NCBI RefSeq assembly: GCF_006345805.1
Contig: NC_043024.1
Coordinates: 15,872,001-15,936,000, forward strand
Origin: Octopus sinensis
Taxonomy: Eukaryota
Direction: 5' to 3'
Length of the DNA stretch: 64,000 nt
Positions 440 to 60,015 of the stretch are shown here, in pieces; position 1 is the first letter of the stretch, and each line of letters opens with the position of its first letter. Below the pieces are notes generated by a model. That model was given only the letters and a program-made list of their open reading frames with translations. It ran no database searches and was not told the origin of the DNA. Made by a program: the position numbers and the translations under genes.

Positions 440-507
440 AATCTGCTGATTGTGAAATGGCTGATGTTTACACATTGATGACTTTAGATGAAATCATGAA
501 TGGCAAG
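440..507 (+). CDS. GCLC: GCLC-like gene copy 1, third-last coding exon (SADCEMADVYTLMTLDEIMNGK)
   Basis: AG at 438-439 and GT at 508-509; translation matches the GCLC segment YTLMSIDTIINGK; phase 0 end joins 3320. Confidence 0.9.
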
Positions 508-542
508 GTAAAAAATATTTTTGATAAATCCTAAATCACATA

Positions 543-1053
543 CTGTAAATCCTCAAGTATAGTCCGCCCTTGAGTATAATACACAGGGGATTTTTAGGGG
601 TCTGTACCTCTGAAAAACCTAAACCTTGTGTATAATACGCACCCCTTCTCTAACTTGAGTCATGCGTAATTTAGCCAGCAACACCCAGTCAAGCAAACAC
701 TTCCGCGCATGCGTAATACAATAATAGCGATGTTCTTAACTGTTATATGGGAATGTAAATATGTTTGCAAATTGTTTTTGTTACATGTTATTCTGTGTTC
801 TGAATACTTTTATTTGAATAAATGTTACTTACTGCAAGCTATAGAAGATTCTTCTGTGCTTTCAAACTTAGCTTAAGGTATTTTCGCACCCGACATCACA
901 AAATGCGTCTGAATAAACATTGCCGGACAGCAAATAGAGACTTGGACATTGATTAGAAAATAATTTTCATTTCTAACCTCATATATAGTATGCACTAGGG
1001 ATTTTGGCCTTAAATTTTGGGGAAAAATGTGGATTATACTCAAGGATTTATGG
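543..1053. mobile_element. Tc1/mariner (pogo/Tigger-type) MITE
   Basis: Imperfect ~25 bp TIRs (ctgtaaatcctcaagtatagtccgc and gtggattatactcaaggatttatgg), TA on both sides. Confidence 0.75.
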
Positions 1054-1074
1054 TATTTTAGATTCTTCATTTAT

Positions 1075-1300
1075 CCATCTTCTCTACTCCCATGGTCTTC
1101 CTCAGAAATAGTGGCCAGAATCCTCAGGCACCGCCTTCATATGGTCTTATCAGAAGCAGCTGGCATCAGCTCTTCCAGCTGGATTACCAAGCATGACCAA
1201 ATGAGACTAAGGATGCTATCCAACCATTTTCTTGGCCTATCACTAGATTTCCTCCAGTTGACTCAACTTGAAGAATCCAACCTGTGATTGTTTCCCGTAA
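1075..1300 (-). mobile_element. Decayed LINE 3' fragment (RTE/L2-like C-terminus)
   Basis: Minus strand reads DRPRKWLDSI...RRCLRIL, resembling LINE GRPRKRWLD...WRRL ends; heavily degraded. Confidence 0.35.
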
Positions 1301-57870: not shown

Positions 57871-58063
57871 ATTGACTGTATATCATCATCATTATCATCA
57901 TCATCATCATCATTGCTATTATTATTATTATTATCATCATTATTATTATTATATGTTTGACGTTTGCCTTGTATTTGTAAAAGTTGATTCCAAGTCTCAC
58001 CCAGAGACCTCAAGAGACAAGTTAGAAGTTCATGTTATCGTTATCGTTATTATTATTATTATT

Positions 58064-59668
58064 CTATGTTTGACTTTTGCTTTATGTCTGTACAAGTTGG
58101 CTCCAAGTCTCACCCAGAGACCTCAAGAGACAACAGGTTGGAAGTTCTGTGCCATATATTTGGGGGTTTTTTTGGTTTTTTTGGTGTTGTACTAGTGAAT
58201 GTCTAATACATAAAAATAAAAGAAAAAAAGAAAAGAAAAGAAAAAAAATAAAAAGAAAAAAAGAAAACAAAATAAAATAAATAAATAAATAAATTTTTAA
58301 AAAGTTTGTTTTAAACCTTGGGATTACATAGAGAGTATTTTGCGTAGGATATGAGCAGTTCCCATGAGCACTATCTTTTGAATTTCTGCCATTTTGGGGT
58401 TTCCTGGTATCTGAGTTAGGTAACAATTAGTCCCTTTCGCTATCATTCCCAGGGCACCTATGACAACAGGTATTGTTTTAGTCTTCAGCTTCCACATTTT
58501 GCTGATTTCTATTTCAAGATCTTTATATTTGCTCAATTTTTGGTAGGTCTTGACAGATACGTTTATATCGATTGGGACAGTCATATCAATGAGGAGGCAT
58601 GTTCTTTGTCTGAAGTCTTTCAATAGGATGTCTGGCCTATTTGCATCTATCTTCCTGTCAGTTTGAATGGTGAAGTTCCAGAGGAGTGAGATGTGGTCAT
58701 TTTCAAGCACTGGGGGTGGTTTGTGTTCCCACCAGTTTTTTTCATGGGGCAAATCCAGGTTTTTGCAAATTACCCAGTCAATATATTGTGCAGCTCTATC
58801 ATGTCTACTGAGGTACTCTGTAGGCGCTAGAAGACTGCATTTGGAGACAACATGATCAATGGTTTCAATTTGTTGTCGGCATACACGACATGTTGGGCTA
58901 CTGCCGTTCTTTAATATGCTGGCCTGGTAGTTTCTTGTTGGTAGGCATTGATCTTGAGCTGCTATGATAAACCCCTCTGTTTCAGATTTTAAGCCAGAGG
59001 CCATTAGCCATTGATGGGTCAGGGCTTTGTCAATATCTGCATTATTCGCTCTCTTTGGGTATTTGCCATAGAGAGGTTTTTCTTGCCATTTATTATTCAG
59101 AATATCTAAGGCCGCAGTTTTGGCACGGGTTTTCATGCACTTAGCTTTTTCTGTGCTTGTTTCTTGTATGTCTATCTCTAATTCCGAAATTGGTTGTATT
59201 CGGAATTCACTTAGATATTCCTTTGCCTGTTTTGTGACTGAGTATGATGCTTTCTTGTTTTGATGTTTTGAGACAAGTTTTAACATCCAGTCCTCAGAGT
59301 TTTTCAGGTAGGTGTCTAGGCCAATTGTAGCAATCTTCATTGTTATTGCCAGTTGTAAAAGACCACGGCCTCCCTCTTTTCTTGGCAGATAGAGTCGTTC
59401 TGTATCTGCCTTAGGGTGGTGCATTCTATGCATTGTCAACAGTTTCCTTATTTTTCTGTCGAGCTGACATATTTCAGTAATTGACCAGTTAACAATATTG
59501 AAACTGTAAGTCACGACTGGTATAGCTAATGCATTGATCGCTTCGATCCTGTTTCTTGCATTCAGCTCTGTCTTGAGTTTATTTCTTGCATTCAGCTCTA
59601 TCTTGAGTTGTTTCTTGCATTCAGCTCTGTCTTGAGTTGTTTCTTGCATTCAGCTCTGTCTTGAGTTT
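58064..59668 (-). mobile_element. 5'-truncated R4/Dong-like REL retrotransposon with an open 441 aa C-terminal ORF
   Basis: ORF 58324-59649: HPKADTERLYLPRKEGGRGL, CRVC...H...C, RHD, NRPDIL...LID...KLSKYKDL; flanked by (TTA)n. Confidence 0.93.
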
Positions 59669-59944
59669 ATTACTATTATTATTATTATTGTTTTAGTCTT
59701 TAGTTTATTATTATTATTATTATTATTATTATTATTATTGAGTGAGAGAGCAGTGCATGCCACCAAAGTGACTCTGAGGTAAAATATACGAAGCCCAGTA
59801 TACCCATCATGATTACTCGTCTGATAAGCGTACACCAGGCACATGCATCACATTATTATTGTTGTTGTTGTTGTTGTTATTATTATCATTATTATTGTTC
59901 TTATTATTATCCTTATTATCGTTGTTGTTATTGCGATCAATTAG

Positions 59945-60015
59945 ACTCTGCTGATTGTGAACCAACTGATGATATTTGCACATTGATGACTATAAATGAA
60001 ATCATGAATGGAAAG
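59945..60015 (+). CDS. GCLC: GCLC-like copy 2, coding exon 14 (SADCEPTDDICTLMTINEIMNGK), paralog of 440-507; the remaining two exons are not seen in the window
   Basis: Clear nucleotide similarity to 440-507, including the flanking tcaattag and gtaaaaaatatt; phase 1 fits exon 13. Confidence 0.9.

Follow-up and report, generated by a model that had tools for sequence, protein, structure and literature searches.

An ancient tandem cluster of paralogs of GCLC, the catalytic subunit of glutamate-cysteine ligase, with four genes of 16 exons each within 250 kb, occupies part of chromosome contig C28 of Octopus sinensis, and we lean towards reading its members, from their residues and predicted fold, as ligases with altered substrate preference and/or regulation rather than as added housekeeping copies. 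As the first enzyme of the glutathione pathway, GCLC catalyzes the rate-limiting step in the synthesis. To our knowledge, it is single and highly conserved in animals, which makes at least seven extra, old and constrained octopod copies unusual. The gene models are already present in RefSeq as 'GCLC-like', and the expansion itself is without a published account that we could find: full-text and supplement searches of the literature returned nothing on GCLC duplication in cephalopods, nor any expression data. A sequence-only reading of this DNA had allowed that such tandem copies might already be known across molluscs; no report of the expansion turned up in the literature searched.

The window, i.e. 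the whole stretch of 64,000 nucleotides that was analyzed (C28:15,872,001-15,936,000), contains the final three exons of one gene (gene A, copy 1) and exons 1-14 of the next (gene B, copy 2), both on the same strand (Table 1). Exons were first located by tblastn with an approximate human GCLC; every model was afterwards rebuilt on database proteins, with identity as the check. The spliced translation of gene A is identical to RefSeq XP_029652761.2 and that of gene B is letter-identical to XP_036370512.1, and each exon in the window matches the Pfam GCS profile or a GCLC-like protein with E values of 1e-8 to 1e-43. The sequence-only reading had placed the end of copy 1 at position 4606 and the beginning of copy 2 within about 5 kb on the same strand, and rebuilding the exons gave the same stop codon and the spacer listed in Table 1. 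The exon that it had recognized in both copies is exon 14, flanked in both by tcaattAG before and GTAAAAAA after, with about 30 alignable intron bases; its identity of 83% agrees with the divergence of about 15 percent proposed for it, and the 513-residue protein then described is the exact sum of exons 1-14 of gene B (1539 nt). The metal-binding motif WGDEIE of gene B is split by an intron, its second Glu (yeast E52) falling in exon 2, and exon 6 stands in place of the canonical HPRF..TRNIR segment, which is near-invariant in true GCLC. No tRNA genes were found in the window.

Table 1. Exons of genes A and B and extent of the four genes of the array. Plain numbers are window positions; positions preceded by C28 are those of the contig.
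Feature	Position	Strand	Remarks
Gene A exon 14 of 16	440..507	+	AG acceptor 438-439; GT donor 508-509
Gene A exon 15	3320..3437	+	DDFPGLIPLIHKYFDLIDYDVNNRRKMMPYLQFLSDKAA; donor GTAAGA
Gene A exon 16 (last)	4440..4606	+	ends ...AFIKR, then TAG 4604-4606; AATAAA signals at 4726 and 4770
Spacer, gene A stop to gene B ATG	4607..9413		4.8 kb
Gene B exon 1	9414..9563	+	ATG 9414; encodes WGDE, beginning of WGDEIE
Gene B exon 2	20306..20412	+	
Gene B exon 3	26071..26178	+	PEYGEYMMEG; yeast E96 and E103 equivalents
Gene B exon 4	29242..29307	+	
Gene B exon 5	30767..30883	+	
Gene B exon 6	31817..31875	+	lowest conservation among paralogs (63-73% nucleotide identity)
Gene B exon 7	32545..32762	+	start of Pfam GCS domain (MDTKLFGLGCCSLQVTFQA)
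Gene B exon 8	35736..35852	+	
Gene B exon 9	38279..38417	+	F328 at yeast Tyr362 position
Gene B exon 10	40468..40580	+	Y369 and Q372 replacing human H370 and H373
Gene B exon 11	44941..45027	+	rewritten motif TIIGSNWHSLKLKLPDEKSGWKIEFRTME; yeast K451, E470 and R472 equivalents kept
Gene B exon 12	48848..48952	+	
Gene B exon 13	51829..51910	+	
Gene B exon 14	59945..60015	+	homologous to gene A 440-507
Gene B exons 15 and 16	65866-65980, 66521-66687		window-equivalent positions, past window end
Gene A	C28:15,832,040-15,876,606	+	
Gene B	C28:15,881,414-15,938,687	+	
Gene C	C28:15,966,085-16,002,015	+	
Gene D	C28:16,081,824-16,013,489	-	tail-to-tail with C

The expansion runs past both edges of the window, as had been suspected: copy 1 begins 40 kb upstream, copy 2 ends 2.7 kb beyond, and two further copies, gene C (+; XP_029652730.2) and gene D (-; XP_036370436.1), follow within the next 145 kb. 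The four are adjacent, complete and independently diverged genes of the same family on one contig, with the same exon phases, and thus form a tandem gene array; the head-to-tail arrangement claimed for it holds for A, B and C, while D is inverted. Genome-wide scans revealed at least three further family loci, elsewhere on C28 and on unplaced contigs, which brings the whole family in O. sinensis to at least 7-8 loci, a lower bound in which the loci at 2.1, 2.3 and 12.2 Mb and on contig C6395 are known from 3-kb loci and RefSeq proteins. The local expansion that had been proposed is therefore larger than claimed and, as seen below, older than the Octopus-Argonauta split and strongly diverged from true GCLC. 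The canonical O. sinensis GCLC (XP_029635280.1) lies on contig C4, a different chromosome, and was likewise covered as a 3-kb locus and a RefSeq protein. Intronless GCS copies full of stops are present on contigs C9530 and C8391; a processed-pseudogene or retrocopy nature was rejected for the window copies because they have introns (15, at conserved phases). Genes A, B and C have intact open reading frames of 606 codons. The last intron of gene B has a non-canonical ATAAGA donor at C28:15,937,981 and exon 13 of gene D carries a 1-nt deletion at about C28:16,029,703 in this assembly, so that some members may be decaying, unless these are assembly errors.

Besides O. sinensis, the family is present in O. 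vulgaris, O. bimaculoides and Argonauta. When 1.84 billion cluster representatives were searched exhaustively, it came out as a single isolated cluster (1151 bits); the next match (570 bits) corresponds to canonical-type GCLC. The paralogs are monophyletic (100/100). Their stem measures 0.9-1.0 substitutions per site, and they are sister to the canonical GCLC of Octopus and Argonauta (96/90), a position that the long branch could have influenced. The octopod canonical GCLCs form a clade of their own (96/93), and the paralogs do not group as GCLC orthologs. The family is older than the split between Octopus and Argonauta. Between these two genera, the canonical proteins are 87% identical and the paralogs about 63%, the paralogs being the faster-evolving. 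At the Argonauta paralog locus, a single copy was found, and the 10 kb to each side of it contain no other. No named protein from squid, cuttlefish or Nautilus came back from a control search with the canonical GCLC, so that the absence of decapodiform paralogs is weak evidence. The tree suggests one GCLC duplication in the octopod stem lineage, which would have been followed by a burst of change and then by radiation through unequal crossing-over, with purifying selection and occasional local gene conversion presumably acting since.

The enzyme core of the paralogs is conserved. The protein of gene B matches the Pfam GCS profile (PF03074) over positions 1-372 of 372 with 455 bits (cut-off 25), and its AlphaFold model (pLDDT 87.6, pTM 0.91) has the GCL fold, the best match in the PDB being yeast GCL (3IG5, E 1.3e-45, TM 0.89). 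In a HMMER alignment to 3IG5, it keeps the equivalents of yeast D49, E50, E52, E96, E103, Q268, R313, K451, E470 and R472, and the Mg2+, ATP and acyl-phosphate ligands among them (D49, E50, E52, E96, E103, K451, E470 and R472) are invariant in a 40-sequence alignment; residue roles are those of the yeast structure as summarized in a Leishmania modelling paper (PMC5613772, Table 3). That every Mg2+, ATP and acyl-phosphate residue is kept argues that carboxylate-amine ligase activity is most likely retained. A C-terminal peptide of 23 residues, TMAQWTRQFVTNHEDYKNDSVVS, is the same in paralogs and canonical GCLC; gene conversion from the canonical gene was rejected as its source because synonymous sites are saturated (dS 0.9-1.3).

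By contrast with this core, much of what is otherwise fixed in GCLC has been replaced. Across 106 canonical GCLCs, 183 columns are near-invariant (conservation of 97% or more); six or more of the nine paralogs depart from 50 of them, and 22 of these 50 carry one and the same new residue in eight or more paralogs. Yeast Tyr362, which contacts the glutamate carboxylate, is Phe in seven of nine paralogs (Tyr being kept in A and D), human M245 (yeast Met262) is A, L, V or T, human C249 is Ser, human H370 is Tyr, and the motif FENIQSTNWQTMRFKPPP has become IQTIIGSNWHSLKLKLPD; in addition, yeast Trp445 is Thr in gene A. The substrate-contact residues (Tyr362, Met262, Trp445 and the surrounding motif) are thus not the canonical ones of a competent GCL. 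Cys553 (human numbering), which we take to have a role in the bond to GCLM, is kept in 105 of 106 canonical sequences and is Pro in eight paralogs and Arg in the ninth. The 26 C-terminal residues of octopus GCLC and one internal segment of nine residues are also missing from the paralogs, which have neither the cysteine nor the tail of a GCLM-pairing holoenzyme subunit. Cys553 has been described as a modified regulatory site (PMC6875399). The octopus canonical GCLC is 61% identical to a mammal's GCLC, as against 50-54% to its own paralogs.

From these observations, a mechanism can be proposed. The paralogs are predicted still to fold as GCL, and most likely ATP would activate a carboxylate, which would then be joined to an amine. 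The parts that appear rebuilt are residues at or next to the positions placed round the substrates by the yeast-structure-based model, Cys553, which is redox-reactive in the vertebrate enzyme, and the C-terminal tail, and it is on account of these that we read the proteins as probable ligases with changed substrate preference and/or regulation, probably doing a modified, so far undescribed job. It is a good deal less likely that the octopod family is a radiation of ATP-dependent carboxylate-amine ligases outside glutathione synthesis, its paralogs making different gamma-glutamyl or related amide compounds; the products would be, for example, gamma-glutamyl conjugates of amines or of amino acids other than cysteine. 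Were this radiation real, specificity would be set by the paralog-variable positions (human 183-194, 241, 245 and 329, and yeast Trp445 in gene A). We know of no genes assigned to the synthetases of molluscan gamma-glutamyl metabolites. No transcript-derived exact copies of the octopus proteins were seen in the protein collection searched.

A conservative alternative is that the paralogs are ordinary glutamate-cysteine ligases catalyzing the same reaction, sub-functionalized by tissue, stage or regulation; they might be isoenzymes that do without the modifier subunit or are insensitive to feedback, and so raise glutathione supply. The retention of the fold and of all metal, ATP and acyl-phosphate residues, the purifying selection and the sharing of the C-terminal peptide with canonical GCLC despite saturated synonymous sites all suit this explanation, the loss of Cys553 and of the tail fits a regulatory change better than a chemical one, and the dN/dS of about 0.28 reported below could also be that of a function that has stayed the same while constraint relaxed. 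We nevertheless consider it rather unlikely, on account of the 50 near-invariant columns replaced and of where some of the replacements fall: the contact of the glutamate alpha-carboxylate, the neighbors of the Trp proposed to contact cysteine (and, in gene A, this Trp itself) and an 18-residue motif that is invariant from yeast to mammal. Moreover, human positions 183, 185, 194, 241 and 245, which are constant in GCLC, vary among the paralogs. Tissue sub-functionalization does not need so wholesale a change.

Two further explanations would deprive the copies of any enzymatic role or of their existence, and both are confronted with the divergence among them. Pairwise differences among genes A-D amount to 13-19% of the coding nucleotides and 19-27% of the residues (amino acid identity 73-81%), with dS of 0.34-0.54 and dN/dS of 0.27-0.30, which argues against both an assembly artefact and long-dead pseudogenes. 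Haplotigs placed next to one another, or a repeat that was collapsed or expanded, could be suspected in an assembly with a 100-N gap inside gene C and three redundant unplaced contigs (C6395, C9159 and C8846) bearing identical copies of one family member; however, the introns of the four copies are unlike in length and repeat content, and O. vulgaris, an independent assembly, has a separate 1:1 ortholog for each of the four, so that the assembly duplication named beforehand as a way to overturn the array is ruled out for practical purposes. The other explanation, that the genes are slowly decaying duplicates or, like S-crystallins, recruits to a structural or binding role, could account for the very long stem, for the quicker evolution of the paralogs relative to canonical GCLC, for the AT donor in B and the frameshift in D in this assembly, and for the failure to find a use in the literature or among transcripts. 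We regard it as quite improbable: A, B and C are intact over 16 exons with conserved phases, dN/dS stays at about 0.28 across dS of 0.3-0.5, 236 of 606 columns are invariant in nine paralogs from four species, and the catalytic carboxylates, Lys and Arg, needless in a purely structural protein, are all kept.

Some exons are more alike than the genes that contain them. Identity is 98% for exon 16 of A versus B, 100% for exon 15 of C versus D and 98% for exon 11 of B versus C, as compared with whole-CDS identities of 81-87%, and the high-identity tracts continue into introns (e.g. 565 bp at 97.5%). By this pattern, short gene-conversion tracts homogenize some exons, chiefly at the 3' end.

If ligases with altered preference and/or regulation they are, the octopod copies, in which ligase chemistry would be kept while motifs invariant from yeast to mammal are rewritten, offer a natural experiment on how specificity and regulation are encoded, and may give octopuses metabolites or a redox physiology specific to their lineage. 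Protocadherins, C2H2 zinc fingers, GPCRs and S-crystallins are among the gene families known to have expanded in cephalopods, and the octopod copies extend this list by a family of metabolic enzymes.

Compared with canonical GCLC, the paralogs share the full-length Pfam match, the fold (TM 0.89), the 16-exon architecture, the Mg/ATP/acyl-phosphate residues and the C-terminal helix peptide, but they are not orthologs: they are 46-54% identical to it, lack the 26-residue tail and the nine-residue internal segment and are replaced at 50 near-invariant positions. The L and S homeologs of Xenopus laevis likewise provide more than one GCLC-type gene per genome; these, however, arose by whole-genome duplication and are canonical, with vertebrate-like scores, whereas those of the octopus stand in tandem, are numerous and have diverged strongly. 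The cephalopod S-crystallins, which stem from glutathione S-transferase (PMC4976375, and general background), are also a lineage-specific multi-copy offshoot of a glutathione-pathway enzyme that diverged fast from its parent; those lens proteins largely lost catalysis, whereas the octopod GCLC-like proteins keep all catalytic residues. The comparison is an analogy only, with nothing that ties the octopod genes to the lens. Finally, a structure search places gamma-glutamylmethylamide synthetase, the 1-naphthylamine GS-like enzyme, YbdK and the Pup ligase PafA on the same catalytic fold, and these carboxylate-amine ligases of the GCL/glutamine-synthetase superfamily show the scaffold switching its amine acceptor while the ATP/Mg chemistry stays; they are bacterial and remote (TM 0.2-0.43, 6-12% identity), whereas the octopus proteins, which do not belong to those families, branched recently from an animal GCLC.

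The window covers 15,872,001-15,936,000 (+) of C28, a chromosome record (20,263,137 bp) of the Octopus sinensis assembly (G000; 2.72 Gb, 13,516 contigs); its G+C content is 32-45% and interspersed repeats are abundant. Exons were mapped with a protein probe and then with database proteins, and all those mapped are on the + strand. The sequence-only reading had proposed that two genes of the GCLC family (catalytic subunit of glutamate-cysteine ligase) stand here in a tandem array. Copy 1 does stop where it had been said to (...AFIKR followed by the stop codon), copy 2 starts 4.8 kb downstream on the same strand, within the 5 kb announced, and the 513-residue protein assembled then is what exons 1-14 of copy 2 encode, neither more nor less (1539 nt). 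The exon noticed in both copies (83% identity) indeed has tcaattAG before it in each, with GTAAAAAA and about 30 alignable bases after it; these common flanks are one instance of a general pattern, alignable sequence reaching about 5-500 bases past most exons.

Joining the window to flanking DNA gave a 256-kb stretch (C28:15,830,001-16,086,000) holding four complete genes, each with 16 coding exons in identical phases, so that the suspected expansion past the window edges is real. The head-to-tail arrangement applies to genes A (copy 1), B (copy 2) and C, and fails for D, which is inverted.

Features of the array and of its introns (plain positions, window; C28, chromosome record)
Feature	Position	Strand	Details
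Copy 1 exon	440-507	+	in window
Copy 1 exon	3320-3437	+	in window
Copy 1 last exon	4440-4606	+	in window; stop TAG 4604-4606
Copy 2, 14 exons in window	ATG 9414 to last at 59945-60015	+	
Gene A (copy 1)	C28:15,832,040-15,876,606	+	606 aa; GT-AG at all introns; = XP_029652761.2 exactly
Gene B (copy 2)	C28:15,881,414-15,938,687	+	= XP_036370512.1 exactly
Gene C	C28:15,966,085-16,002,015	+	= XP_029652730.2 exactly
Gene D	C28:16,081,824-16,013,489	-	inverted, tail-to-tail with C, gap 11.5 kb
SINE-like copies	2140-2380, 3510-3741, 37815-38047, 44136-44368, 51978-52210, 56508-56726		13 more fragments
LINE remnants	11626-12687 (+), 22268-23326 (-), 41020-41784 (-), 58324-59649 (-)		long open frames in copy 2 introns
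Young tandem array	53757-54994		398 bp x 3.1, 99% identity
Young tandem array	48156-48800		300 bp x 2.1, 98% identity; ends 47 bp before copy 2 exon 12
Young tandem array	61003-61787		CT-rich units, 133-167 bp

The last-intron donor of B reads ATAAGA (C28:15,937,981, window-equivalent 65981, outside the window), against GTAAGA in A, C and D, which reflects either a real donor mutation or an assembly base error; the RefSeq protein of copy 2 splices there all the same. At the start of exon 13 of D (C28 ~16,029,703, outside the window), GTGAT stands for the GTTGAT of B, a 1-nt deletion that shifts the frame. The frame-restored reading is RefSeq XP_036370436.1, so RefSeq must have bridged the same gap; KVDENF is read through in that protein and in the O. 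vulgaris ortholog of D. Either feature may be an assembly error or a true lesion. A 100-N assembly gap lies in intron 6 of C (C28:15,979,804-15,979,903, outside the window).

The O. vulgaris models (P0010, P0008 and P0002) lack exon 3, with its two metal-binding glutamates, in copies A and D and show an unrelated N-terminus in place of exon 1 in copy B. Such differences look more like gaps left by annotation than like biology, since O. sinensis has an intact exon 3 in A (C28:15,838,626-15,838,733) and D (C28:16,076,899-16,076,792) and an intact exon 1 in B. Two other paralogs have annotated isoforms, P0007 (O. sinensis isoform X2) and P0005 (O. bimaculoides), in which the last intron is read through and whose ends are ...GETIHLFSSILNK... 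and ...GKMIHLFSSILNK..., respectively. As the start of this intron is conserved across paralogs (gtaagaggattcatttg in copy 1, window 3438-3470), an alternative C-terminus without the last exon may be a family feature.

Genes A-D share 73-81% amino acid identity pairwise, with dS of 0.34-0.54 and dN/dS of 0.27-0.30, and the independent O. vulgaris assembly contains a distinct ortholog of each; this divergence and these separate orthologs exclude an assembly duplication. Orthologs also exist in O. bimaculoides, and nine paralogs from four species agree at 236 of 606 columns; long-standing pseudogenes are unlikely. Identity is distributed as a mosaic: only 81-87% over the whole coding sequence, it rises to 97-100% in single exons (exon 16, A-B 98% and C-D 99%; exon 15, C-D 100%; exon 11, B-C 98%; exon 10, B-D 97%). 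The high-identity tracts reach into introns (A-B exon 16, 373 bp at 95%; C-D exon 15, 565 bp at 97.5%, and exon 16, 606 bp at 93%), and those of C-D sit where the 3' ends of this inverted pair face each other. Local gene conversion and purifying selection thus both act in a real, old, multi-copy, partly tandem GCLC-derived family.

The introns of copies 1 and 2 also house a SINE-like element of ~235 bp, which occurs 19 times in the window, whole or partial and in one orientation, at 74-90% identity to the copy at 2140-2380; one fragment (6786-6851) lies in the spacer between the genes. Among the LINE remnants, two frames match the AP-endonuclease domain (Exo_endo_phos, E 4e-12 and 1.5e-7) and one reverse transcriptase (RVT_1, E 1.6e-28), the fourth giving a weak zf-RVT match. 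The CT-rich units leave 60407-62310 open in all three + frames.

Whole-genome scans with the Pfam GCS profile and the copy 2 protein revealed more loci on C28 (near 2.10, 2.30 and 12.16-12.22 Mb) and matches on unplaced contigs C6395, C9159, C8846 and C10460, the last exons being identical among the first three. Exon-7 and last-exon sequences distinguish at least seven or eight paralogs, a lower bound. The canonical GCLC, i.e. the true ortholog, lies on contig C4 (16.328-16.360 Mb; XP_029635280.1, 649 aa). The scans also returned two intronless copies riddled with stops on unplaced C9530 and C8391 (loci L001-L003, L005 and L028; G000:C9530:18184-19433 and C8391:18-2334); these GCS homologs begin MGLLSCGESLKW and look like old processed pseudogenes of canonical-type GCLC.

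Maximum-likelihood trees recover the paralogs as a single clade (support 100/100), whose stem measures 0.9-1.0 substitutions per site and whose sister group is the canonical GCLC of Octopus and Argonauta (96/90). Argonauta hians has both gene types (canonical, 87% identity to octopus canonical; paralog, ~63% to copy 2); the duplication is therefore older than the Octopus-Argonauta split, and the paralogs have evolved about three times faster than canonical GCLC. The transcript-derived protein P0013 falls outside both the paralog and the octopod canonical clades; it probably comes from another cephalopod, given its 79% identity to octopus GCLC and its grouping with octopods at 100/100. When 1.84 billion cluster representatives were searched exhaustively, the family came out as a single isolated cluster (1151 bits); the next hit (570 bits, 46% identity) matches canonical-type GCLC. 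We call the family 'octopod-specific' provisionally, because a control search with canonical GCLC yielded no GCLC protein named as squid, cuttlefish or Nautilus.

Copy 2 covers the full Pfam GCS profile (455 bits) and aligns over its whole length with yeast GCL (structure 3IG5; E 1e-88), on which its predicted structure (pLDDT 87.6, pTM 0.91) superposes with a TM of 0.89. Residue roles were taken from Table 3 of PMC5613772 and positions transferred by HMMER alignment. Copy 2 keeps the equivalents of yeast D49, E50, E52, E96, E103, Q268, R313, K451, E470 and R472, all of them metal, nucleotide or acyl-phosphate ligands (PMC5613772).

The catalytic core is thus intact, and many otherwise invariant positions are rewritten. 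Conservation reaches at least 97% in 183 columns of 106 canonical animal GCLCs; all nine paralogs keep 97 of these columns, and six or more differ at 50, of which 22 have one new residue fixed in at least eight of the nine. Tyr362 (yeast numbering, Sc), which bonds the glutamate carboxylate (PMC5613772), is Phe in 7/9 paralogs, and a residue of the modelled glutamate pocket, human Met245 (Sc Met262), varies among them. Cys249 has become Ser and Cys553 Pro or Arg; the motif FENIQSTNWQTMRFKPPP has turned into IQTIIGSNWHSLKLKLPD and, in copy 1, Trp445(Sc) into Thr. His370 is replaced by Tyr; in humans, His370Leu is a GCLC-deficiency allele. Invariant in GCLC, the HPRF..TRNIR segment varies more than any other part among the paralogs, which also lack the last 26 residues of octopus GCLC. 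The latter is 61% identical to a mammalian GCLC and only 50-54% to its own paralogs.

By contrast with these changes, copy 1, copy 2 and canonical GCLC agree in all 23 residues of TMAQWTRQFVTNHEDYKNDSVVS (window 4440-4606 versus locus L014 on C4). Gene conversion is ruled out as the cause, since 9/23 codons differ synonymously and dS is 0.9-1.3 over 48 last-exon codons; the identity instead reflects selection, the segment being under unusually strong constraint.

We infer that the paralogs are still ATP-dependent carboxylate-amine ligases, whose substrate preference and/or regulation differs from that of GCL. As the main rival reading, they may be ordinary isoenzymes of GCL whose regulation has changed. 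Relics, or proteins with a non-catalytic role, are less likely, given that all catalytic residues are retained. The gene models are present in RefSeq, GenBank and UniProt as 'glutamate--cysteine ligase catalytic subunit-like', so the sequences themselves are not new; the full text and supplements of octopus genome papers yielded no account of the expansion, divergence or function of these GCLC-like genes. A changed ligase is plausible, since the same superfamily includes enzymes that have kept the chemistry and changed the acceptor.
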